Shown: positions 1 to 23,584, numbered from the stretch's first letter. The stretch is DNA of 64,000 nt from Bigelowiella natans CCMP2755 (GCA_000320545.1 ADNK01003147.1:26101-90100), one strand, 5' to 3'. Notes: generated by a model from the letters alone, not told the origin. Translations and numbers: made by a program.

Positions 1-3000
1 GATCATATCTAGTGCAGCGGTTTCATTTTTACCCTTGATGTTATAGCTGTTCATCATTTCCTTGTAGCGTTTCGCAAGGCTGTCTGCCCGCTTATGTATG
101 GACTCTTTCGCGTGCTTAAACGAATCTAATATGGTAGCGCCACGGAATAACCACTGGTAGAAATGGTACTGGAAGATACGCGCCTCAATGTCACCTAGCA
201 CCTCCGACTCCTTACACACAATGACATGGTCTACTAATTTCGCTACCTCTTTACCGACGGCCTGACTGTGACACGCGGCGAGAAAGAGGAGTTTAAGCTC
301 ATACGTCTCCGTCTTTTTAGCATCCTCTATGGCTTTGAGAAAGTCTTGACCGGATATCATTACTGACTTGCCATCATCGTCAAATAAAAGACCTTCCTTT
401 TCGCCATGGCCGCTATAGTGCAAAATGGTGCAATTGCTGACCAGAGCTCGCACTAAATTCGGTTTGGTCGCCTTCCAGCGTGTCGTTTCAATTTTCTTCC
501 CATCAGCACATGGCAGCCGGTTGATACGCTCAAATATCTCCGAATCAAGGTCTAGATCCAGGTTTTTGTTCTCTTCACTCGACAAGGCACACCAGGACAG
601 GAAAGCGAGATGAGACTTGACTTCGTCGATTCTTGGTTTCTTTCTCTCTTGCTCCCTTTCGCTAACGAAGTTGATCGCTGACTGAGATTTCACAACTTTG
701 GTGTCTGAGGCTACACCGAGGTCTTCATTCCCATTGGATTCGTTGCCGCCCCACTCGTATTCCTCTTCATCGGAGTAATCATCAAAAACCTCTAAGATGT
801 CGTCGGCAATGGTTGTAGAGACGTCCTTAAGTAGCTGAAACAATGCGATGACACTCCCTGAACGAACGCTTAGGAGCCGTACGCGCAACACACCCGGGAT
901 ATGCTTCCGCACATAGCGCTTGGATTCGTCCTTGAATCTTTGTAGATTTTTCCCGCATGTTTCCTGGAATGAGAGTTTATCGAAGCAGAGAGAAATCTCT
1001 GTAAGTTGTATCTTACTCTGCGCCTCCCATGGCATTTCATGCAAGCATCGAGCAACTTCAGCGCCACTCAGTCGGGTCTCACACTTGATGTAATTGGATT
1101 TTTCTTTCTTGCTACTTACGATTAGCATACATTCGTTAATAAGGTCCTTTTTGAGGTCACTTTTAATTGCCCTGCCGTGGGAGAGGAGGAAGCGGCTTAG
1201 CTCGTGGACACTCATGCTGTCGTACACTCCGCCGATGTTGTTGTAGCTAGTCGCCACAGAAGGATGGGGTTTCTCCGCGCTGTACACCTTCAAATAGATA
1301 CCAAGAGCCTTCTTGTATTCCGTGAGCGCCTCCGGGTATTTCCTCATGCTCTTATACACTCCGCCGATGTTGTTGTAGCTATTCGCCACATGAGGATGGG
1401 GTTTCTCCGTGCCGTACACCTTCAGCCTTATATCAAGACTCTTCTTGTATTCCGTGAGCGCCTCCGGGTACTTGCTCATATCATAGTACGCTCCGCCGAT
1501 GTTGTTGTAGCTAGTCGCCACATCCGGATGGGGTTTCTCCGTGCCGTACATCTTTAGCCTTATATCAAGACTCTTCTTGTATTCCGTGAGCGCCTCCGGG
1601 TACTTCCCCATGCTCTTATACACAAAGCCGATGTTGCCGTAGCTACCCGCCACATCCGGATGGGGTTTCTCCGTGCCGTACACCTTCAACTTCATAGCAA
1701 GAGCCTTCTTGTATTCCGCGAGCGCCTCCGGGTACTTCCCCATCTTTTTGTACACTGTGCCGATGTTGTTGTAGCTCATCGCCACAGCAGCATGGGGTTT
1801 CTCCGTGGCGTACACCTTCAACCACATAGCAAGAGCCTTCTTGAGTTCCGTGAGCGCCTCCGGGTACTTGCTCATTCCACAGTACACATTGCCGATGTTG
1901 CCGTAGCTATTCGCCACATCCGGATGGGGTTTCTCCGTGCCGTACACCTTCAACTCTATATCAAGACTCTTCTTGTATTCCGCGAGCGCCTCCGGGTACT
2001 TCCCCATGCTATCGTACACTGAGCCGATGTTGTGGTAGCTACTCGCCACATCCGGATGCGGTGTCTCCGTGCCGTACACCTTCAACCTCATAACAAGGCT
2101 CTTCTTGTATTCCGTGAGCGCCTCCGGGTACTTCCCCATGCTACTGTACACGGTGCCGATGTTGTGGTAGCTCATCGCCACAGCAGCATGGGGTTTCTCC
2201 GTGCCGTACACCTTCAAATAGATACCAAGACTCTTCTTGTATTCCGTGAGCGCCTCCGGGTACTTCCCCATGCTACCGTACACTGAGCCGATGTTGTTGT
2301 AGCTACTCGCCACAGAAGGATGGGGTTTCTCCGTGCCGTACACCTTCAAATAGATAGCAAGAGCCTTCTTGTATTCCGCGAGCGCCTCCGGGTACTTCCC
2401 CATCTTTTTGTACACTGTTCCGATGTTGCCGTAGCTTCTCCCCAGATAAGGATGGGGTGTCTCCGTGCCGTACACCTTCAACCTCATAACAAGACTCTTC
2501 TTGTATTCCGCAAGCGCCTCCGGGTACTTCCCCATGCTATCGTACACTCCGCCGATGTTGTGGTAGCTACTCGCCACATCCGGATGCGGTGTCTCCGTGC
2601 CGTACACCTTCAAAAAGATATCAAGACTCTTCTTGTATTCCGCGAGCGCCTCCGGGTACTTGCTCATATTAGAGTACGCATTGCCGATGTTGCCGTAGCT
2701 ACCCGCCACATCCGGATGGGGTTTCTCCGTGCCGTACACCTTCAAATAGATAGCAAGAGCCTTCTTGTATTCCGCGAGCGCCTCCGGGTACTTGCTCATA
2801 TCAGAGTACACATTGCCGATATTGCCGTAGCTTCTCCCCAGATAAGGATGGGGTGTCTCCGTGCCGTACACCTTCAACCTCATAACAAGACTCTTCTTGT
2901 ATTCCGCGAGCGCCTCCGGGTACTTCCCCATGCTATCGTACACTGAGCCGATGTTGTGGTAGCTAGTCGCCACATCCGGATGCGGTGTCTCCGTGCCGTA

Positions 3001-6000
3001 CACCTTCAAAAAGATATCAAGACTCTTCTTGTATTCCGCGAGCGCCTCCGGGTACTTCCCCATGCTATCGTACACTCCGCCGATGTTGCCGTAGCTACCC
3101 GCCACATCCGGATGGGGTTCCTCCGTGCCGTACACCTTCAAAAAGATATCAAGACTCTTCTTGAGTTCCGCGAGCGCCTCCGGGTACTTCCCCATGCTAT
3201 GGTACACTCCGCCGATGTTGTGGTAGATAGTCGCCACAGAAGGATGGGGTTTCTCCGTGCCGTACACCTTCAAATAGATAGCAAGAGCCTTCTTGTATTC
3301 CGTGAGCGCCTCCGGGTACTTCCCCATGCTATCGTACACTAAGCCGATGTTGCCGTAGCTTCTCCCTAGATAAGGATGGGGTGTCTCCGTGCCGTACACC
3401 TTCAACCTCATAAGAAGACTCTTCTTGTATTCCGCGAGCGCCTCCGGGTACTTCCCCATTCTACTGTACACATTGCCGATGTTATGGTAGCTAGTGGCCA
3501 CATCCGGATGGGGTTTCTCCGTGCCGTACACCTTCAAATTTACATCAAGACTCTTCTTGTATTCCGCGAGCGCCTCCGGGTACTTGCTCATATTAGAGTA
3601 CGCATTGCCGATGTTGCCGTAGCTACCCGCCACAGAAGGATGGGGTTTCTCCGTGCCGTACACCTTCAACCGCATAGCAAGACACTTCTTGTGTTCCATG
3701 AGCGCCTCCGGGTACTTCCCCATGCTATCGTACACATTGCCGATGTTGTTGTAGCTACCCGCCACATCCGGATGGGGTCTCTCCGTGCCGTACACCTTCA
3801 AAAAGATATCAAGACTCTTCTTGAGTTCCGCGAGCGCCTCCGGGTACTTCCCCATGCTATCGTACACTCCGCCGAGGTCGGCGTAGATACTAGCCATTTC
3901 TGTTTGATTTTTTCCTGTTTTGGATTCAGCAGAAACTAATGCTTCAGTTTCAGTTTCACCGAATTTTGCGGCGCTTAAGAACCAATATAAAGCTTTATCA
4001 TAAAAACATGCAACGTTACAGGCCTGGCCCAAAATCTTTGCTAGCCATCGTAACCAGCTGCGTTCTGCTTTGGAGGATTTGTGCAGCGTCATTAGCCGGG
4101 TTCCGTGCTGGAGCACCGCGGCCCATTCGTCCTGGCGGTCGTGAGATTCACTGTAGTCTCCTCCGTAGGCAGCCAGGGCTACAACCAGATTTCCAATTTT
4201 GGTTTGTGGCTGCAGGTACCTCACTATCTCTTGCGTGACAGCGTGCATGTTTATGCAATTGGTTTTTCGGCTCCATTGTATCAAGGAATAACGCTCTAGA
4301 AGCGCTAACGCGTCGCGAACGTCTTCGTCCTCTTCAGAGACCGCCAGCTGCTTCTCGTCGTTCTTTTCATCTTCCGTGCAATCTTTGATATCCTCAACCT
4401 GATTGGGCGATTCGTCAAATTTTAGAAGAAGAACCAGTTCCAATGGAATGTTTTTCGGATCCAGGTACGCAAGCGAACGCAACAACGCGAGGCAGTCCAC
4501 GCATGAACTTCCAGCGGGGTGCCCGATCGCGTCTGGATCCGACAGGCTTGACAGGCTCTCGCGGACCACTTCGACGATGCTCTGTCCGTACCTGATGCTC
4601 TTGTTGGGGTTCTTAATCAGAAACCTTTTTCTTCCTAGAGACTGTTTCTTTCGCAAATTCTCGATGCGATCTGCTACCTTGTAGTAGCCCATCTCTTTGC
4701 AGTGGCTGAAGAATTGCGCTAGGATCACGGGCATGCCCGAGAACTCGGTTTTCAGGTACTCCATGCAGTCCTTCGCATCTCTGTCTTTTGGGTCGGGCAT
4801 TTTTAGGCTGAATTTACGGGCGAACTGCACCAGATCTTCTTCATCCATGAGCCCGTCAATCGGCCAGCGTTTGACGTCCAGACTCCAATCGGTGGTTTTG
4901 CTGTTTCTAGACGTTAGGATCACGTGTCCTTTGTTCCTAGGTAAGAACTCAGCTATGTCACTGCAATCACCAACATCGTCGAACACCAGAAGGCAGCGTT
5001 CAGTCTCGATTCGTTCCCTGATGGTTTGGATGGCCGATTTGATGTCCTTTTTGTCAACAACGTGCAGGCCTGGGATGTTCTTCTCAGCGATGCGCATGTA
5101 CCCGATCTTCAGCTGCTCAGTTGTTTGGCAATCTAGCCAAAACGCGTGAGAGTATTGACCGGTCTCAATGAGGGCGTCAAACAACCGGACGGCCAACTGG
5201 CTCTTCCCAATACCCCCATGGCCACAGAGCAGATGCACTTGTTTGCTGGCATCTTTGAGTTCATGCAGAACCTGCTTGACTACTTTCTCCCGCCCAACGA
5301 AGAAAGACACTTGGTCTGGGCCGGGGATGAGCGTCATTGAAGCTCGGAGTCTCATCTGAAATTCAATTTGAAAATAAAATGTACACACACAGATGTAAAG
5401 ATCAAGTTTTAGATGCCATGGGGTTTCCTCGTGGAAAGGAGGGAAGGTAAATGGGGGATGGGTCCTGTACCGACCGAGGGGTGAGGGAAAAAAAAATGTC
5501 GGCGTGTTTTTGTGCAGATGCACAATGAACTAAATGTTATAAAGACATAACTGTATACACTGATACTCCCAAAAAACCGTACCAACCTTTTCTTTCTTAT
5601 TCTCTTCCTCTATGAGTATCCCTGCAACGCGGACTAGATGCTGTTTGTCCTCAATCACTATCTTTTGGCTCCCGGGTGCCGAAGAAACAGCTGTTCTCAG
5701 CATTCGTTCCGCCAATTTTGTGCACAGAGCAGGATTGCGTACATCCTTGCCAACCTTTACGTCTGCGAACATGTATGTCCAATGGAAATATCTATCAACC
5801 CAATCCGCCAATATCGACTCTAAAAAGTAACGATACCTTTGTAAAGCGTTGAAAAATGGTAAGATTTTAGGCCTCGAGTAGCAATGAACTTCGAGTGTAA
5901 ATATCTTAGAAACAGTTTCTTGAATCGCTCTTTATATAAAGGGTTCATCTCCACAGCCTGCAAGTAAACGTGTCAATTGCTGCTTGAACCGAAACAATTA

Positions 6001-8834
6001 TGATGACAATTTTTCACAATGATTAACTCTGATAGAAGATCATTTTGTACCTTGCAACAAGGGTAATCAATTTTCTTCCTTGACGTAGTAAACAGCAATA
6101 GAGATTTGCTGATTTTTAGAATCTGGTGAAATGCTTGCGGTCCAAGGAAACTGGATACGTTGTCGCAAATCTAAAAGACAAAATTTTCACCTGGGTTCAA
6201 CCTCAACACTAGAAACCCTCATAACATCTATCTATTCAAACAAAAAAGGTACCAGTAAGATTCGTTTTTCTTTTTTATCTTTGAGCGAATGGAGAGGATC
6301 TCCTGCTATCAAATGGTGGCTTTTATCGGAACATGTCGTTTTTGCAACCGCCGATAAAACACCCTTTTCATCAGCAATACCGGCAAGGTCCACCTGAAGA
6401 AAAATTGCCATAACCGTTACGAATACGCTAACAACACCTCGAACGAACACGAATTGTATTCGAATGAAATCTTGCATCCATTTCATGTGCACAGAATGCA
6501 CTCATTACATACACGCGTGCACACATGCACGGAAAACATGATCAGGACCCAATAGATAGCATCTGGCCCGTCGTTGTCATGCCACATGGACCGGGCTACC
6601 ACCTCCGCCAAAACAGATTTCCCGCTACCCTTCCCACCCACGATTTGGATCCATTGAGTTGCAAACGTTTTCTTGAAAACAGCATGGTCGTTCTTTATAG
6701 AAAGCCTGCAATTTTCCAAGATTTCACGATACTGCTTCTTAACTACATCTCGTGAGAAGAAAGACCCAGGATCTGGATCTGGGATCCATCCGGTTTTGGG
6801 CTCGATTTGTTCCAACTCCCTGAACTCGTATGTCACGTTGTGAATTTCATCGTTGTCAGTGGACCGGGGTAGAAGTATCAATTTGTCTACTTCATTCTCA
6901 GCTAAATCTGCCCAAAGGAGCTCCTCTTGTACTTCCTGATTGATGTTTTCTTCCTCGCAGAAGATCCGAAAGTCTCGTTCTACCTTCCACTTTGCATTGT
7001 ATGTTGTGCATTGCGCATGCAGAGACTTGAGTTTTTCCTCGAGCTTGGCTGCGATTAATGATGGCTTGGGATGCTCCTCCAGGTAAAAAAGCGCTCGGTT
7101 TTTACATTGCTGAGCTATCACACGGAGTCTTCGCTTGGCCAGTTCAAAAGCTTCTGATACAGAGTGCCCTTGTAGCAACCGTTGATAAAATATACCCGCA
7201 AATACCGGGGCACCGTAATCGCTGAGTTCGTCCTTTCCTCGACAAGCTATGACGTGGCTCACTAATCCATCTTCTATGAGTTTTTTGCCTACAATCTCGC
7301 TGTGGCATGCCGCTAGATACACAATCTTAGGCCGTCCATTTTGATTCCTTCTGAACATTTCTGCAAGGGCTTTTCCACCAAGGTATTTGCTGGTTTTTCC
7401 AATCGCTGGGCCACCTTCAATGCAGAGACCCTTCTGAGGATCGCCGTGCCCAGAGAAATGGAGACAAAAACAATTCGAGCCGATAGCAGTATCTATTTGC
7501 TCCTCAGTCGCACGATATGTCGAATACTGAAATTTGGGATAAACTCTGATGAGTTCCCGCATCAGCTCATACTCAGTTTGGAAATCCAGTGCCTTATTGT
7601 CGGCCTCGTTTATCGGAGAAGACGATACGTACGCGATGCGGGCTGGGAGCTGCTCGGCCGATACCATTGGTTTTGCGTGAGACGGAGATATCTAGGGGTT
7701 CAGAGAAACGTGGAAAGAAGGTCGATGTGATACAGGGAGGGAAGCCAAAACAAAGAGAGTCAGAGAGTGTTTAGACATAAACAAAGAGAAAGGGAGTGGG
7801 GGGGGGGGGGATTTAAAAGAGATGATCTGGCAGAGAGAATCCACGGAGATGATCATGAAAATTTAAACTAACATTTTATGCTCAAACGATACCCAATGGA
7901 AAGTACTAGTACTTACACATTACTAAGCTTAGGCATTGATGATTACAACAAATGTCGTAAAACGTTTCATGTGGCTGGCCAGCTGTTTGAAGCAATGAAA
8001 AATTGACTAAACTAATCGTACGTGCGACAAGGGTTTTATTGCGGTGAAGGGACTCTTTGGGACAAACGACGACTACAATTTAAAGAACATGAATGTCAGG
8101 TAAAGAAGAACAACGTGGGGGTAGAAAGAGTTCAGAGAGATGATCAGACAGAAAGAGCGCACAGTGAAGATTTTTGGTTGCCGCTTCACTGAAAATTTTA
8201 TGGTTGATTTACATGTCATTAATTAACAACCGTTATTACAATGATGTCACTAAGCATGAAATATTGTTTTAGACTTTCTACAAGAGTGTAGATTTTCGCA
8301 CTGCAATTCTGAAATCGTGACAAAATGTGTTACGTGTTCTATCGAATAAGAGATTTGGTTCCAAATGCTTGAGTTTTCCTTACATGCGATGGGGGCTCTT
8401 TGGTATCTGGTTTTTCGAACATTTTATTGAGTTTTTTTACAAGAATCTCTAGTTGGATTCGTGGCCCCATCTTCTTGCCTTCAATCATCTCCTTCACGTG
8501 ATCCGGGGTCATTTCCAACAGATCCTCACCTGTGAGGTCGTTTTCCTCTATTATCTGTGGATGCCGCAACATTAGTTAAGTCTCCGTGTTATTACCGATT
8601 ACGTATTGGAATGTTTATGTGCAATGAAAACTTGAGTGACTGAGTACTTGGGTCTTTGCTAGTGATGTGTATGACTTTATTGGAGGAGGAAGGGGGGAAG
8701 ATTCGGGCCAATTTTTGAACCTTAATGATTTTTGGCTTCGTTTTGAGTGCACGGGCATTCGCACGGAGCCATTGCACCAGACCCTCACCAGAGAAATCCT
8801 CGAACTCTTCCCTGGTCAGAGATTTGGAGTCCAT
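1..8834 (-). CDS. Giant NLR-like STAND protein: SAM - CHAT - NTPase1 - NB-ARC NTPase2 - 20 TPR - SEA-like linker - CHAT2 (3'-partial, >2400 aa in window)
   Basis: Hand-built GT-AG exon chain: 8834-8721, 8554-8384 (SAM: WL..IIEENDLTGEDLLEMT..KE..MGPRIQL), 7691-6549 (CHAT1 HFSGHG / YLAACHS; Walker A GGKGSGKS), 6393-6253, 6170-6051 (Walker B RILL|ICDNV, LLFTTSR), 5957-5837, 5762-5587, then one open exon 5355-1 (FVGRE, GHGGIGKS, LLVFDDV, ILTSR, GMP, LAYLDPKNIP, MHAVTQEIVR, TPRs, SVRSGSVI, CHAT2 HYSGHG / FLAACHS). No stop is reached inside the window. The 5587/5355 splice is the least certain link, so two tandem genes are possible. Confidence 0.85.
1213..3876 (-). repeat. Coding tandem array of 20 x 132-bp (44-aa) TPR units with very high internal identity
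   Basis: The anchor (g)ccgatgttg recurs every 132 nt from 1231 to 3871. Consensus NIGxVYxSMGKYPEALAEYKKSLxIxLKVYGTEKPHPDVAxSYx (kinesin-light-chain/NPHP3-like TPR). Confidence 0.97.
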
Positions 8835-10575: not shown

Positions 10576-12445
10576 TCACACACGTCGAGTTGTTGTCTGA
10601 AAATATATGCCATGCCGCACGTAGCGTACAGTAGTCATCACGTTATCTATGATTACGTAACGAGATTGTGGACATTGCATTGGTGAGCTTAATCGGTTGT
10701 TATAACCTTTGACAGGAGTCTGAAGTTTAGTAGCCGACACTCTCTGCCCGTAGTGGCAATGCACAGAAGGGCCCATTTTAACAAATACAGCTGGCATCAC
10801 TGCCACTCCTACATTAACACACATTAAATAAATAAATAAATAGATAAATATGAAGATGAATAAATTAAAAATTAGAATTAACAACAATGCTAATAATAAT
10901 ACTAAATCAATATAAAGATAAAAAACTCATGGAGGCATTGCTTTGCAATGCACACAGCTGTAGCTATATTTCTGTTATATGTGTCGAGTGATGACCCTTT
11001 TCTTTCAGCTCATCCATCGATTTCGCATCATCGCTATCCTTGAAGTCCTCAGGCTTGGGAAGATCATTCGTGATGTAAACTGCAGCATGCTTGAAAATGT
11101 CGTTAGCAAACAAGCCCTTGCTGAAAGCGTATGGCTTGTAGAGTTCGATGGCCGACACAACAGCCTCCTCTGCAAAAGGAGTGAGTTGGTATACAAAACA
11201 CGCGTTGAGAACCTTGCGCTTGACACTGCATAACGCTCCCCCCTCGTAATCAGAGCGCGTCTGTTCAATTGTGTAGTTGCCCTCCATTGGAGGGCCAGAA
11301 AGGGGGCTTAACGGAAGCTCAGCCTCTGCGTCATCGTAGTATGCTTTCAGCTCTTCCAGCATTTCTGCCGCCTTCTTCTTGTCTTCATCAGACTTTTCCC
11401 CTCTCAAGTTTCCTCTTGGGCCTTCAAACTCCGCCCTCAATGAGACCAGTTTCGCAGCCTTCTTCGCAATGCGAGAGGTGACGTCCGCAAGAGGGTACTC
11501 GCTCGGTGAGGCCATGCCGTTCTTCTCGGCGACCTTATACCAATACTCAACATCGCACGGGATGAAACGGCTGTAGGGAGTCACGTTGTATTCGGTGCCG
11601 ACAGCATACGCGAATTGGGCAAAGCAGTTGCCCTTTTTAGCATACTCGAGGAGTGTGGCGAGGGCTGCTTTCTGGACATCGTTGCGCTGGCGGCAAGATC
11701 CGTTTAGTCGGAAAACGGCGTTGGAGAGCACGATGTTCGTCTTTCTCTGCGCGTCTGTTTTCGCATCCTCCGCCTCTTTCAATAGCATGTCCGCCGCGCT
11801 TGTTGACGTGATTTTGATCAACTCAAAACCCTTTTCGAGTTTTTCCTTGTTTTCCTTCATCTCTACCGCCAGGCGGATCTTCTCCTCGAAGGCGAGTTCG
11901 CTGAGCGTATTTCGGAGAGTAATTTCTCTCTTGATAATCCAAAGCGCCACGGATTTATCTTCTCTCTTCTTCTTGGCCCATCCAGCGGCATCAGCCTTTT
12001 GGAAGGCAGCCTTAACACCTGCCACACTTGTTGGCCTCTTGTCGTTGTCCTTATCAACAACGAACTTGGGGTGGAGAAGGCATCCGAGCGCCATGTTTCC
12101 TTCAGGGTCCTTCTCGCCAGCCTTGGCGAAGCTTTCCGCAGCAGCCTTGAAATCTGTATTATTCGTTTGTGTTTGTGCTTGCGTGAGCGCGTGTTGTGTG
12201 CGTGTTGTGGGCGTGTGTGTGTGTGTGGTTTGAGTACCTGGGGTAGTCCCGACTCCCATCATCAAAAAATATCCATATTTGAGTAATCCTGCAACTTCAC
12301 CAGTTTCGCTCGCTTTCTTGGCGTATTCGAGAGCTTTTTCGGCGTTGAAGTAGTAGTTCTTGCAATTCATATCGCCCTTGTCGTTGTACAGAGCCGCAAG
12401 CGCGCACATTGCCTTTGCGTCTCCTCCGTCAGCCTGTGCGTTTAT

Positions 12446-17700: not shown

Positions 17701-19882
17701 GGGAGGCGGGGAGGGGGAAGGAAGTATTCGGTTTCTTCAACTCCAAAAGCTTTGTAAAGAAAAAGAAATATGACAAATTCCCAAACGGTGCGTATAATCG
17801 ACTCTCTCTTCGCACACTGTATGAGTTATCTCTGTTGGCACCTGATTGTCGCGCCTCTTTTATCCCAATAACACACGACGTGGAGCTCCATGAGCGAGGT
17901 CCTCCTGTGCAGTTGGGGAAACAACACGCGAATTTGAAATCATGTGCAATTTCGAAAAAACTCGTACAAAATCTTGCTCATCCTTATCACCATCGTTGTC
18001 TATATCTATATTGCGAACAGCATCATACACGCGCACAACAGTCTCTAGATTTCAGATCGAAGCAAAACACGAGATCTCTCCCCCATAAACTAATCAAGCG
18101 GCAAAAGGTCTATAATGGCAAAACTGGCAAGCATAAACTAAACAATTCCTTCCAGCTGCGGAGAGCAAAAAAACGTCGCGTAATGAAGACTTACCACAGT
18201 CTGCATCGGTAAAGGTATATGTAACTCCTCGGTACGTGCCCCCCCCACCATAGCTCGCAGGAGCTTTGCAATGATGCAGCTGCTTGAGCTCCTCGACGCT
18301 ATCGACCGCCTCTTTTGCAATCTTTCCAGAGCACGCAAGGTACTTATACAAAGCATCAGCATCGTGCACGATGCTCCCTGTGCGCGAGGAGCTAGAGCCG
18401 GTTAGCCAACTTTCAAGCTCGTACTTGCCGACAGCAGTCTTCGCCTTCACTGGCTTTATCGTGGCGAGGTGGGGGAGGTTGGCGAGCACCGGAAACTGGA
18501 CCGTAGGGTCCACTGGCGGCGTGAGCGCGTATATCTCCACCTTGCTCACTACAATTCTATTAGGCCCGGGCATGCCCCCCCCATAATTCACTGTTGACCC
18601 AAACGAGTACCACCATTTCGTGGCATGGTTATTTGAAGAACCACTCATCATAGTGGAAGAGCCAACGTTATATTGAAGCCCCCCCCAGTACTCTCCCGTG
18701 TAGGGTACACTATCAGCTTGGTAGCCTGTTACCCCCCTTGAACGCTTGATGAAGGGATTTGATGTTTGATACCAGATCTGCGGCTTGAGGTCATGCCCTG
18801 GCCAAATCATCTTCAGCCATAGTCGTCCGTCCGGCATGCGGTAGGTCTCGAGCTGATCGAAGATCGCGTAATTCGCGGCATTTGGGTTACCGGCGTTGAG
18901 CGAGAAGGTGGTTATGCTCGGCCACAAGCTTGCGGTATTGAAAGTTTGGCGCCCGATAAGAACCTCGCTGCCGTGCGTAATTGTCCACGACCACCCGTCT
19001 TTATCCTGAATCGTCAGAGGGTGGTAGTATTCTTGCAGTCTCCAGTGATGAATCTTTGGCGCCGAGATCTCCACCAACGCTTGCTCTTCCGTGAGCTTTA
19101 AGGAGCCTTCTGTCATTGCTTGCCACATCTTGTGCGTGAAAAACGTGTCCTTCGTCTCCTTAGGAAATTCCGGATCGTTCTGCATGCCGTACCAGTCGCC
19201 CTCCCAGACATATCGCCCCGCTTCTTTCGCGGGAACATCCTCTGGATTGTTGAATAGCTTATCAAAATCATCCGCCCATTGCAGCTGTGCGCACCCGCGC
19301 TGCCGTCCGGCAAACCCGCCGTAGTAGTCGTCAATGGAGATCTGTGACACCGACACGTGCGTGTTCCTCCCGACGAAGAGGAACTCGATCTTGCCCGAGC
19401 TATCCGTGGTGGCGACGCCGTGGATCATCTGCTGGTTCTTGCAATGCGAGGCGACGATGTACTTGTTCGGCCCGCCGTTGATTTTGAGCTCATTGGTCCC
19501 GCAAGGGTACCACCCTGGAGATACGCCAGCTGTGCAGTAGTTCCAGATGTGATAGTGATACCTGGATCGGGGGGGGGACGGTGATAGCGAAGATTAGAAC
19601 GCTTCCTTCATTAGGAATGAGACTATAGAGATTGTACGTGCGTGACTGCGTGACTATATTGTCGCGAGTGGTGGGGTGTGTGGCAAGCTCGCATCGTGTG
19701 CATGAATAAGGGTGGGAGGGGCCGTAGAGCTCTTCCTGTTTTTTTGAAGTTAGAAACGCACTTAAATTCTACTATTATAATATATTATCTATGTTTGATT
19801 TATACACACACACACACACAAACATATATATATATATATATAATTTTGTGTATTTTAACATATCATACTATATCAAACCAAC

Positions 19883-21828: not shown

Positions 21829-23584
21829 TTGTAAATACGCACATTGTCGTCCCCGTATATGTAGCCTCGCCCATATTCCTATTAGTCCTTATGGCAGAGA
21901 CTTTTGGGAGCCCTCCTAAGAAGACGCGTGATGGGATCAAAAAACAAAGTATTAGCTAGCTAACACCTATCGCATGTTCCAACGCTATGCGAAACGTGCG
22001 CAAACACAGGAAATGTGCTGACACTGACCAGCTTGAATGTCTGACTCGTAGTAGGCCTGACCGCCGTTGTTATACTGGAAGATGTGAAAAATATATCGTT
22101 TGCTAGTTTGGAGACCAGAGATCACCGCCGTTCCAGTGCCTGACGAGTCTCGATACCGACCGAGATGGTAGCTGGCGTGCTTTGTAAAGCCTGTGAGAGC
22201 AAGCTTGTCAACCTGCCCAGTGACTGGAGAGTTATGGCTTGTCGTCGCACCTGACGTTGTCCCTGTATAGCTACTCAAATCGAAGTAAATGGGGAACCGC
22301 CGTTGCTCGCCGGTTCCCACAAGACAGCGGCACTCTTTGGTGATGCCCGGTGCAGGATTTCCAAACTCGCCACTCGTACAAGAGATGGAGGTTTGACTGT
22401 GCTTGACCTTCAGCTTGCCTTGGTCGATGGCTGACCTTATCGAGTCCGCAGGATTGAGGTAGAACACCGGCCCCGAGCAGCTGCAAGTTCCCCCTTCATT
22501 TGCACATTTAAACGAGACGATGGAATCGATGTGGAGCATTCGATAGACCCCATTCTGTGACCCCCCTCCCACCTTTGTCAAAGTTCCCCAATAGCCGGGT
22601 ATTCGCTTGACTTTCGCGTCTACGCCGGCAATCGTGGTACGTTTCGAGTAGAAATTCGTGTTTAAATCCGAGAAATCGCCCGAGATGGCGTGGTAGAAAT
22701 GCGGTCCATTGCTAACAGCGCCATCCTGAACGGCAAATAACCCATCCGTGGCAGACTTGGACTCGAAGTAAGCGACGGCGTGATCCATTTGGGATTTGTA
22801 GCACTCCTCCGTGGTGCACCTTCCCGACTTAGCGCGAGTCATAATCCTGGCGCTGGTGGAATCCTGGTAGATTCCATCGAAGACAAACAGCCAATTCGTC
22901 GAGCACGCTACTTCAGGCACATATGCGTAGATGTCGTAGTAATCATAGTGTGCAATGCCACAGGAGGTCCCTGCGCCGAGGCCAGCGTAAGTCTTGGTCG
23001 GTTCTCGTCGGAGCTGAAACGCTCCGTATCGATTCCCCCCTCCGTTCCGGCTATGCCAGAAATTTGCGGCCTGATTGTCGCAACGAGATGTCCTCCTATC
23101 GTTCTTCATGTTTCCTAGATCTTCCCACAAGTCTCCTGGCCCAGGGCTGTAGACGTAAAGGCCGGAATCCATTACTCCCGAATTACAGCGACTGGCGTCA
23201 TTTCCTAGGATGTTCCAGCAAGAAGCAGCGCCATAAAACCTCTGCTTGTACTTTATCTTGGTCCACTTCTGCAGATTGCTAACACGAATGTAGTGCATGG
23301 AATCGGCTCCAGGGTTGCCACAACCTGGGTTTTGACCAGTAACTGCGATCTTCACACCGCCACTGCTGCTTTGGTATGCAGTAGTTGATCCACAGTTTTT
23401 TTGCCAGACGATATGCGAGTACTGCACGTGCACCCATTGTGAGGAGGTCAAGCATTGGGGAAAGACGTCCACCTCCCGGTAGTTCCTAACGTCTCCATGG
23501 AGGATGTGCGCCGCGCTTGTGTAGTGGCCAGAGTTGACGTAAGTTGCTGTGTGGGCCTTCAAAGCGCATCTGTGTAAGGGTTAC

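Follow-up and report, generated by a model that had tools for sequence, protein, structure and literature searches.

The window, a stretch of 64,000 nucleotides from Bigelowiella natans CCMP2755, opens on an NLR-like gene with two CHAT protease domains, an observation made in a preliminary description of the sequence and confirmed here. The gene lies on the minus strand and comprises eight exons, which begin with an ATG at 8834 and carry about 2,857 codons, all of them open. All eight are bounded by GT..AG, their phases are consistent and the model agrees with spliced paralogue models. The encoded order is SAM-like domain, CHAT1, a short NTPase (NTPase1), NB-ARC, 20 TPR units, linker, CHAT2 and a further NTPase (NTPase3); as far as the preliminary description had given this order, it is borne out by motifs, Pfam matches and the phase-consistent exon chain. 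The features are as follows, with negative positions used below for sequence to the left of the window:

8721..8834, minus strand: exon 1, 38 codons, N-terminal half of the SAM-like domain (donor GT at 8720)
8384..8554, minus strand: exon 2, 57 codons, C-terminal half of the SAM-like domain (AG/GT borders checked)
6549..7691, minus strand: exon 3, CHAT1 and then the start of NTPase1 (Pfam CHAT, AlphaFold, Foldseek)
5587..6393, minus strand: exons 4-7, remainder of the short NTPase1 (tblastn of paralogue proteins)
6393-6253, minus strand: exon 4 (homology, GT..AG borders)
6170-6051, minus strand: exon 5 (homology, GT..AG borders)
5957-5837, minus strand: exon 6 (homology, GT..AG borders)
5762-5587, minus strand: exon 7 (homology, GT..AG borders; donor 5587 RNA-verified)
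5356..5586, minus strand: intron 7, 231 nt, GT..AG (spliced RNA contigs)
3898..5355, minus strand: start of exon 8, NB-ARC and winged-helix/DUF7779 region (Pfam, motifs)
1258..3897, minus strand: 20 TPR units of 44 aa (Pfam, unit count)
1213..1257, minus strand: partial 21st TPR unit, 15 residues, ending at the junction 1213/1212 (unit table)
610..1212, minus strand: linker, 201 codons (paralogue comparison)
1..609, minus strand: CHAT2, running off the window with its exon (open frame, profile, AlphaFold, Foldseek)

Exons 1-7 are predicted from homology, the donor of exon 7 at 5587 being the sole RNA-verified border among them. Exon 1 is based on the paralogue P0165 (jgi/Bigna1/142209), residues 1-41 of which align to 8840-8718 (61%), and exon 2 on residues 40-101 of the same protein, which align to 8557-8378; exons 4-7 were placed by tblastn with the spliced paralogue proteins P0159, P0006, P0158 and P0165. 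The terminal exon 8 runs for 2,195 codons without a stop and ends 1,229 bases to the left of the window. Its stop-free frame begins at 5529, passes position 1 and, with the upstream contig added, amounts to 2,253 codons reaching -1229, where the last sense codon of the gene ends (L004:8771). Both the stop-free 5355-nt exon and its suspected continuation beyond the window, as put forward in the preliminary description, have therefore held up, the continuation encoding a third P-loop NTPase before it reaches a stop.

Predicted domains

Exon 2 alone matches Pfam SAM_1 with E=0.027 (15.3 bits against a cut-off of 23, profile positions 26-63) and the SAM chain of Sfmbt in the PDB (5j8y_C) with E=0.29, and in a language-model atlas the N-terminus of the paralogue P0165 has a SAM lead of 0.85. 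These matches point weakly to the SAM domain named earlier, but the Pfam match lies below its cut-off, and we refer to the region as SAM-like.

The catalytic motifs of CHAT1 are HFSGHG (7460-7443) and AACHS (7313-7299), those of CHAT2 HYSGHG (420-403) and AACHS (279-265); both His-Cys dyads are intact, as had been noticed earlier. The H..GHG and AACHS columns are conserved at 90% or more in the alignments A1 and A2, and in A2 the CHAT1 residues H75, H79 and C126 are nearly invariant. CHAT1 matches Pfam CHAT (PF12770) above the cut-off of 24 (4.1e-6, 26.9 bits). CHAT2 alone gives weak Pfam matches (Peptidase_C14 at 3.6e-4; CHAT at 9.8e-3, 15.8 bits, below the cut-off), and the profile A1, made of CHAT2 and its relatives, matches the solved CHAT protein 8tl0 at 5.4e-31. 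A modelling check gave the same answer for both regions, each AlphaFold model matching 8tl0 at about 4e-11. For CHAT1 (mean pLDDT 84.5, pTM 0.84), the best Foldseek match is this SAVED-CHAT protein at 3.6e-11 (rmsd 3.0 over 193 columns), followed by MALT1, caspases, legumain, Csx29 and separase; for CHAT2, where most 10-residue blocks in residues 190-650 have a pLDDT above 90, it is again 8tl0, at 3.7e-11. The models, which are of high confidence, predict a caspase-hemoglobinase fold for both regions, and by sequence both are assigned to the CHAT group of clan CD caspase-like proteins, with predicted protease activity.

All three Walker A motifs of the gene are intact: GGKGSGKS in NTPase1 (6638-6615) and GHGGIGKS in NB-ARC (5223-5200), the two within the window that had been reported as intact, and GLEGAGKT in NTPase3, off-window at -264..-287. 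NB-ARC matches its Pfam family (PF00931) at about 1e-12 to 1.2e-13 (51.4 bits against a cut-off of 23.5) and is followed by DUF7779 (5.9e-6); it further contains Walker B LLVFDDV (4992-4972), GHVILTSR (4929-4906) and MHA(V) (4248-4237). Since it has Walker A and B, sensor 1 and a winged helix in which an MHD-like motif is found, it is predicted to be a complete STAND NTPase, in agreement with the earlier reading. NTPase1, spread over exons 3-7, had been described as short, and it does fall short of a full STAND core, but it is no stub: a Walker B (RILL/ICDN) spans the join of exons 4 and 5, and a sensor-1-like LLLFTTSR lies in exon 5. The same region of the paralogues P0158 and P0159 gives weak AAA_22 and NB-ARC matches. 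The off-window part of the gene matches NACHT below the cut-off of 26.7 (1.1e-4, 22.5 bits). NTPase3 has its Walker B at -480..-500; its AlphaFold model comprises a P-loop alpha/beta domain and two helices, with no winged helix seen. NTPase1 and NTPase3 are truncated STAND-like P-loop domains that retain Walker A, Walker B and sensor 1.

The unit table bears out the reported repeat number: there are exactly 20 TPR units of the KYPEAL type with a period of 44 aa, plus the partial 21st, and the array matches Pfam TPR_12 (4.7e-224, 725.7 bits) and TPR_10 (4.8e-188) above cut-off. By per-position entropy, the units combine an invariant scaffold with hypervariable positions 3, 6, 10, 13, 14, 30, 32 and 44. 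The linker behind them has no Pfam match and a pLDDT below 50 in AlphaFold.

Origin of the second protease module

The gene is an odd, chimeric member of a large B. natans NLR-like family, to which a genome search assigned at least 48 CHAT matches and whose canonical layout is SAM-like domain, CHAT, short P-loop NTPase, NB-ARC with winged helix, and TPR. The paralogues C180 and JGI model 142209 have this canonical form and end after the TPRs. Similarity to C180, a close paralogue, stops at 1213, and similarity to another family gene, on contig C1201, runs from 1218 to -2027; the 3.25 kb from the junction onwards are a copy of the 3′ end of this gene, whose type is laid out as Ank-TPR-linker-CHAT-short NTPase. 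As seen from the unit table and from a comparison of the junction peptide with C1201, the junction lies inside a TPR helix, the 21st unit being cut after 15 residues. Copies of the linker exist at three loci only in the genome, namely C590, C1201 (98%) and C3401 (80%), and only three copies of the full CHAT2-NTPase3 module were found.

Judged from these alignments, the CHAT doubling, reported here as new, is the result of a rearrangement: behind its repeat sensor the gene acquired, in frame, the tail of another member of the family, and with it a second predicted protease. This is no ancient designed architecture but the product of an event that broke a TPR unit mid-helix and attached a C1201-type 3′ end to it. 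The gene is probably a transcribed, chimeric NLR-like family member made by in-frame capture of a C1201-type 3′ end. The rearrangement broke the 21st TPR unit after 15 residues and joined 3.25 kb of this 3′ end in frame, yielding a predicted protein of 2,857 aa with a protease and NTPase module at either end.

Whether the captured module contributes to the receptor bears on an unlikely, though by no means negligible, alternative, in which the young chimera is expressed but functionless, CHAT2-NTPase3 adding nothing or even poisoning the receptor, and in which the same duplication and rearrangement that left a hypermutated copy produced the fusion as a side effect, neutral or mildly harmful. 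A junction in the middle of a TPR helix is what an accident would be expected to produce, and the close paralogue C180 does without the module. Downstream of the gene lies a decaying, 5′-truncated and TpA-hypermutated duplicate, whose CHAT exon contains a stop and whose 132 lineage-specific changes include 113 of the type A>G or T>C. The dN/dS values against C1201 over linker, CHAT2 and NTPase3 range from 0.13 to 0.26, the linker having 0.13 (8 synonymous and 4 non-synonymous changes); in the C590 lineage alone, however, 5 synonymous and 6 non-synonymous changes were counted in the captured module, a dN/dS of about 0.3 that is not significantly below 1, and the C-terminal 150 residues appear unconstrained. 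Against a functionless product stand 2,857 of 2,857 codons open, the integrity of the two dyads and of the three Walker A motifs, transcription and splicing of the gene, and the course of the TpA hypermutation, which ends near the end of the chimeric gene and spares its coding sequence.

RNA across the chimeric gene

The gene is transcribed and spliced. Its 5587/5355 junction, for which an RNA check had been proposed, is present in spliced RNA contigs of three studies (runs X1, X2 and X4), whose shorter side measures 114 letters, and is thereby confirmed. After correction of each bin for its exon share, the depth over intron 7 is zero, and the RNA runs therefore represent clean mRNA at this locus; a raw-read run yielded 12 reads only. 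From 5355 to -299, the RNA assemblies contain no further splice joint and no intron signal. Linker, CHAT2 and the start of NTPase3 are covered by exact RNA contigs, CHAT2 by a single one of 1,939 nt, and the contigs L005:2193-2549 and 2376-2549 span the TPR/linker junction by 37 letters with 0 mismatches. Because RNA contigs cross this boundary, the doubled architecture exists in mRNA. The tripartite NLR-like layout of effector head, STAND switch and repeat sensor is found in that order in one transcript, on the basis of the phase-consistent exons, the NTPase1/NB-ARC joint in RNA and the same order in spliced P0165.

It is rather improbable that the locus instead consists of two transcription units, i.e. 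a canonical mRNA ending soon after the TPRs and a separate linker-CHAT2-NTPase3 unit that starts within the linker or the last TPR, such that no protein would carry both proteases. This arrangement would fit the RNA contig depth, which over CHAT2 is 1.5-3x that over the NB-ARC exon and is compatible with 3′ bias or an additional shorter transcript, and it would fit the repeat array itself, within which the contigs break, so that no single RNA molecule or contig runs from NB-ARC through the TPR array into CHAT2. However, no stop interrupts the 2,195 codons from NB-ARC to the end of NTPase3, a canonical gene minus the fusion would lack a stop codon, contigs of clean mRNA cross the junction without mismatch, and no pile-up of molecule ends is reported there. 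The separation into two genes, named at the outset as what would undo the double architecture, is thus countered by both the RNA and the open frame.

Proposed mechanism and known systems

For the chimeric receptor favoured here, an immune or cell-death role may be inferred by analogy with related systems. As in Apaf-1, NLRs and fungal or bacterial CHAT-STAND proteins, the NB-ARC switch would be released once a ligand binds to the hypervariable surface of the TPRs; the released protein might then form an oligomer, assisted by the SAM-like domain, in which clustered CHAT domains could be activated by proximity and cleave a substrate, and thereby signal defence or cell death. In this scheme CHAT2 would serve as an additional protease head. 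Among the window ORFs of at least 220 aa neighbouring the gene, no Pfam match and no substrate gene was found. A genome profile search with the gasdermin family PF04598 gave no match and is uninformative because its controls were equally silent, and among the papers covered by a literature search none names both Bigelowiella and NB-ARC.

The integrated domains of plant NLRs act as baits and are often placed after the sensor. By this comparison, the C-terminal CHAT-NTPase could be a decoy that mimics the family heads and detects pathogen factors attacking them; its position after the sensor and its capture from another family member fit, but its catalytic dyad and P-loop are fully conserved and no pathogen or effector is known, making a decoy highly improbable. 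An assembly artefact joining two loci, conceivable in a repeat-rich region with near-identical copies on other contigs, is refuted by the exact junction in independent RNA assemblies from three studies (0 mismatches).

The likeness to bacterial and fungal CHAT-STAND-TPR proteins suggested in the preliminary description is well founded. In fungi, CHAT is an NLR signalling module, some NLR-like proteins have a CHAT or S8 protease at their N-terminus, and a TPR-bearing CHAT protease activates gasdermin (PMC12881547). The fungal CHAT-NLRs share with the B. natans gene a STAND NTPase that signals through a CHAT and has hypervariable TPRs of high mutual similarity, as well as an expanded, fast-shuffling gene family. 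They differ in that the gene described here belongs to a chlorarachniophyte alga, begins with a SAM-like domain, inserts an additional short P-loop NTPase between its first CHAT and NB-ARC, and continues beyond the sensor into another CHAT-NTPase; moreover, in contrast to fungal CHAT-gasdermin systems, no gasdermin or other substrate gene was found among its neighbouring ORFs of at least 220 aa. Both CHAT domains find their best match, by structure and by profile, in bacterial SAVED-CHAT (8TL0); together with the Craspase TPR-CHAT Csx29 it is the source from which the model of activation by induced assembly is borrowed. Yet sequence identity is only 20-26%, and what switches these proteins is a cyclic nucleotide sensor (SAVED) or a CRISPR complex rather than a STAND NTPase.

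For the NTPase parts, the best sequence match is the NB-ARC/NACHT switch of Apaf-1 (3e-15), found with profile A1, which matches Apaf-1, AfsR and plant NLRs at ~1e-15. The Apaf-1 apoptosome with caspase-9 and NLR inflammasomes likewise combine repeat sensor, nucleotide switch, oligomer and a proximity-activated clan CD protease, but the Apaf-1 type recruits its protease via CARD, whereas that of B. natans lies in the same chain, and their sensors are WD40 or LRR instead of TPR. The closest NB-ARC-TPR relatives outside Bigelowiella are proteins from Bacteroidota MAGs (37-41% identity, 1e-78 to 1e-69), which share the head-switch-TPR layout but have OTU or lipase heads; among those listed, none has a CHAT or a second module behind the TPRs.

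Finally, two or three CHATs per chain are also found in tandem CHAT-CHAT proteins such as a 'caspase family protein' of Nostoc linckia and unnamed metagenome proteins. Adjacent CHAT domains being common among the database relatives (18 of 156), a chain with two CHATs is not in itself unprecedented. What does stand as unprecedented is their arrangement: the CHATs of the tandem proteins are directly adjacent, whereas those of B. natans lie ~1,950 residues apart and flank the switch and the sensor.

Gene model, domains and folds

The final exon of this NLR-like gene belongs to a minus-strand frame without a stop codon that runs from 5529 beyond the left edge of the window (negative positions lie left of it). 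Including 10 kb of left flank (L004), this frame comprises 2,253 codons and ends at window position -1229. Paralogue proteins bear JGI Bigna1 and EukProt Bigelowiella_natans accessions, which identifies the host as the chlorarachniophyte alga Bigelowiella natans. Exons were mapped by aligning four spliced paralogue protein models, i.e. P0165 (jgi/Bigna1/142209), P0159 (Bigna1/89576), P0006 and P0158, and all exon borders were checked for GT..AG and phase.

Exons of the doubled gene
E1, 8834-8721, minus strand: ATG; N-terminal half of the SAM-like domain
E2, 8554-8384, minus strand: C-terminal half of the SAM-like domain
E3, 7691-6549, minus strand: CHAT1 and Walker A
E4, 6393-6253, minus strand: NTPase1
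E5, 6170-6051, minus strand: NTPase1
E6, 5957-5837, minus strand: NTPase1
E7, 5762-5587, minus strand: NTPase1
E8, 5355 to -1229, minus strand: NB-ARC, TPR, linker, CHAT2, NTPase3

E1-E7 have a combined length of 1,986 nt and join E8 in phase 0, giving a predicted protein of 662 + 2,195 = 2,857 aa. The preliminary description of a doubled CHAT-bearing gene holds in frame, motifs and domains, and the gene extends further off-window. The His and Cys motifs lie at 7460-7443 (HFSGHG) and 7313-7299 (AACHS) in CHAT1 and at 420-403 (HYSGHG) and 279-265 (AACHS) in CHAT2; both Walker A motifs are confirmed (6638-6615 and 5223-5200), a third is found off-window at -264..-287, and the KYPEAL-type TPR units number exactly 20, with a period of 44 aa. 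In Pfam searches, the E8 frame yields NB-ARC (1e-12 to 1e-13), DUF7779, a very strong TPR signal, weak Peptidase_C14/CHAT matches near the window end and a NACHT-like P-loop in its off-window part, and the CHAT match of the 402-codon frame 7691-6486 exceeds the Pfam cut-off. The SAM domain proposed at the N-terminus is weakly supported. NTPase1 is not a stub ending after Walker A, since four further exons hold a Walker B motif straddling the E4/E5 join (RILL|ICDN) and a sensor-1-like LLLFTTSR in E5.

A word-indexed protein search with the linker-CHAT2-NTPase3 segment (814 aa) returned no match, and a full HMMER scan with the same query returned 1,366 relatives, mostly matching the CHAT core; the blank is thus put down to word indexing or to the length window. 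Aligning 63 of the relatives shows the two His, the Cys and the next Ser to be at least 90% conserved. The profile of this alignment finds the solved CHAT protein 8tl0 (SAVED-CHAT) at 5.4e-31; through its NTPase part it also reaches AfsR and Apaf-1 as well as NLRs of plants and animals (1e-15 to 1e-8). Structure prediction likewise points to CHAT and STAND folds, as the preliminary description had assigned them. The CHAT1 exon model (mean pLDDT 84.5, pTM 0.84) has 8tl0 as its top Foldseek match (3.6e-11, rmsd 3.0 Å), followed by C11, MALT1, caspases, Csx29 and separase. The CHAT2-NTPase3 model, with confidence mostly >90 over residues 190-650 and <50 in the linker, also has 8tl0 on top (3.7e-11), the next matches, to its NTPase part, being AAA+/p97 and the NLR RPP1. 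In the model, NTPase3 combines a P-loop alpha/beta domain with two helices and lacks a winged helix; behind it comes a repetitive tail of ~150 residues, apparently free of constraint.

The 20 TPR units are built on one invariant scaffold and vary chiefly at positions 3, 6, 10, 13, 14, 30, 32 and 44; outside these eight hypervariable positions of the 44-aa unit, the units (window 1258-3897) are near-identical. Such an invariant scaffold with hypervariable positions is the pattern of fungal NLR repeat sensors.

Origin of the second CHAT-NTPase module

Single exons served as queries throughout. The genome comprises 91.4 Mb in 3,736 contigs, and the window is C590:26101-90100. CHAT-plus-Walker-A exons gave at least 48 matches; the full CHAT2-NTPase3 module occurs in three copies only, at this locus and on contigs C1201 and C3401. 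For the canonical half (SAM-like-CHAT-NTPase-NB-ARC-TPR), the nearest paralogue lies on contig C180; it matches at 92% over window 2621-7885 and ends after about ten TPRs, beyond which C180 matches sequence that is located here downstream of a second, truncated copy. Similarity to C180 ends at 1213, and that to C1201 (96.9%) begins at 1218 and reaches -2027, dropping to 86% past the stop codon. At this fusion junction (1213|1212), TPR unit 21 is cut after 15 residues, within its first helix, and the linker comes next (repeat table); in C1201, the linker is preceded by unrelated sequence. There, a frame of 1,467 codons encodes an Ank fragment, TPRs, ~400 residues of unknown sequence, the linker, CHAT and NTPase, with neither CHAT nor NB-ARC upstream.

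C1201 could in principle be an allele of the locus, but its similarity is limited to 1218..-2027 and the flanks differ. Nor is C1201 itself doubled, as only Ank and TPR lie upstream, without CHAT or NB-ARC. The break between C180 and C1201 similarity, the cut TPR unit and the C1201 layout together indicate that the doubled gene was born by rearrangement. As judged from these sequence comparisons, it arose when duplication and rearrangement added the 3′ terminus of a different family member in frame. We regard this as a dated, traceable module capture, in which a break inside a repeat welded a second protease-NTPase head onto the sensor end, and which shows how immune-type repertoires shuffle.

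An in-frame fusion on C3401 puts the module ahead of another CHAT-plus-P-loop exon, and module duplication within genes recurs in the B. natans family. This locus stands out for a traceable capture, backed by RNA, that placed a second CHAT-NTPase module behind the sensor.

Several features of these family members are worth recording. The donor-type gene on C1201 (L007:3743-8143 = C1201:17743-22143, plus strand) has five KYPEAL TPRs and divergent TPR-like repeats after Ank, two helix-rich stretches before CHAT that by eye are SAP-like candidates, and a short NTPase, all within the single 1,467-codon frame. On C3401 (23051-26488 = L006:5051-8488, plus strand), a 1,146-codon frame passes from linker-CHAT-NTPase directly into a second CHAT and Walker A and ends at a conserved intron site of the gene family, constituting an alternative head doubling at the front of a gene; immediately upstream of it is an ORF for a protein kinase (Pkinase 2e-27; C3401:21219-22667). 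The paralogue P0165 (1,624 aa) carries two near-identical tandem NB-ARC modules (aa ~597-1026 and 1035-1500).

Selection on the captured segment was gauged against both other copies.

dN/dS of the captured segment against the copies on C1201 and C3401
Linker: 0.13 (C1201); 0.55 (C3401)
CHAT2: 0.26 (C1201); 0.76 (C3401)
NTPase3: 0.26 (C1201); 0.66 (C3401)
Tail: 0 synonymous, 13 non-synonymous changes (C1201); 1.13 (C3401)

When changes were polarised with C3401 as the outgroup, the core showed five synonymous and six non-synonymous changes in the lineage of this locus and 10 and four, respectively, in that of C1201. These substitution counts hint at constraint acting on the chimeric copy, short of significance.

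Expression across the fusion junction

RNA was mapped to window -299..5700 at ≥98% likeness, using one raw-read run (X22) and three assemblies from three studies (X1, X2 and X4); ~0.6 of the words of the locus are present in RNA-type assemblies of several studies. The predicted splice between 5587 and 5355 is borne out by the joint 5355|5587 in all three assemblies, with 231 nt skipped and GT..AG on the minus strand, and these assemblies contain no further joint between -299 and 5355. About a quarter of retained intron or contaminating DNA was considered for the RNA runs; however, each of the two intron-containing bins is just as deep as its exon fraction alone would make it, which leaves zero depth for the intron, and the runs represent clean mRNA at the locus.

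X4 covers 30 of 30 bins, and X1 provides an exact 1,939-nt contig over part of the linker, CHAT2 and NTPase3. Other exact contigs bridge the final TPR residues and the linker (2193-2549 in X2 and X4 and 2376-2549 in X1, in the RNA-mapping coordinates L005), which dismisses an assembly artefact. The junction contigs derive from this locus, given that C1201 shows ~15 differences from it along the X1 contig and bears no relation to it on the upstream side of the junction. Contigs break within the TPR repeats, so that the two halves never share one record. CHAT2 is covered 1.5-3 times as deeply as the NB-ARC exon; X22 contributes 12 reads only, too few for joints, starts or strand. The locus provides RNA-backed evidence of splicing and expression of a CHAT-STAND-TPR gene in a protist.

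Relatives, proposed working and the downstream duplicate

CHAT-STAND-TPR proteins are already known in bacteria and fungi; our literature search found no paper on them in chlorarachniophyte algae and none naming both Bigelowiella and NB-ARC. Outside Bigelowiella, the NB-ARC-TPR half is most closely related to proteins of Bacteroidota MAGs (37% identity, 1e-78), an affinity that bears on the origin of eukaryotic NLR-like switches; ENA proteins whose heads are OTU or lipase domains are close relatives too. Of 156 relatives, 18 have two or three CHAT domains side by side, a Nostoc protein among them.

The CHAT-plus-NACHT head is shuffled onto several sensor kinds. In other chlorarachniophyte transcripts (P0010, P0013 and P0163, from Norrisiella sphaerica and JGI, and P0032, from MMETSP), it is joined to SH2 domains or follows a response-regulator receiver.

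By analogy with fungal CHAT-bearing NLRs and TPR-CHAT/gasdermin pairs (PMC12881547), a ligand would probably bind the TPR surface, whereupon nucleotide exchange at NB-ARC would let the protein oligomerise, aided by the SAM-like domain; the clustered CHAT domains would then be activated by proximity and cut substrates, with CHAT2 serving as a second head. Such a scheme would copy Apaf-1/caspase-9 logic and that of fungal CHAT systems. Since adjacent CHAT pairs are common in relatives, CHAT-CHAT pairing in one chain is plausible by analogy. We consider it rather unlikely that the fusion is a working two-headed receptor, with a caspase-like protease and mini P-loop at both ends of a switch and sensor, CHAT1 and CHAT2 pairing in cis or between neighbours upon oligomerisation like the pseudo and active halves of separase or the adjacent CHAT pairs of relatives, and a snapshot of protist immune repertoires gaining outputs by capturing effector modules of sister genes. 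Of the doubled NLR-like protease receptor originally proposed, the sequence, RNA junction and doubled architecture stand, and the interpretation is supported in part. The locus is a natural construct for asking if it matters for activation that two caspase-like domains sit near each other in the same chain.

A genome search for gasdermin (PF04598) gave no match, its controls being equally silent, and neighbouring ORFs of at least 220 aa within the window had no Pfam match. Three long minus-strand ORFs close to the gene (10964-12409, 18094-19428 and 21985-23562; 444-525 aa) lack a Pfam match at E≤0.001.

Beyond the stop codon lies a 5′-truncated duplicate of the canonical gene (window -2060..-5829), matching 7098..3149 at 89-93%. 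It is followed by a retroelement integrase (L004:2849-3790, window -7151..-6210, minus strand), an ORF whose zinc-binding domain (Integrase_H2C2, 5e-7) marks a retroelement remnant.

When part of the duplicate (L004:4921-7941, window -5080..-2060) is compared with window 3900-7098 and C180:6660-9823, its mutation load is strongly skewed: of 132 changes specific to its lineage, 113 are A>G or T>C, vs 15 of 66 in the expressed copy. These changes fall almost exclusively at TpA, where 50% of the T's and 34% of the A's have changed, vs 1-3% in other contexts. By its sequence signature, the pattern looks like repeat- or silencing-linked TpA-to-CpA/TpG hypermutation, and the duplicate may bear on genome defence in B. 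natans. Over window -1250 to -2027 (L004:7973-8750), divergence from C1201 is 8-11% after the stop codon vs 1-3% in coding sequence, and a hypermutated or fast-diverging domain seems to start at the end of the expressed gene.
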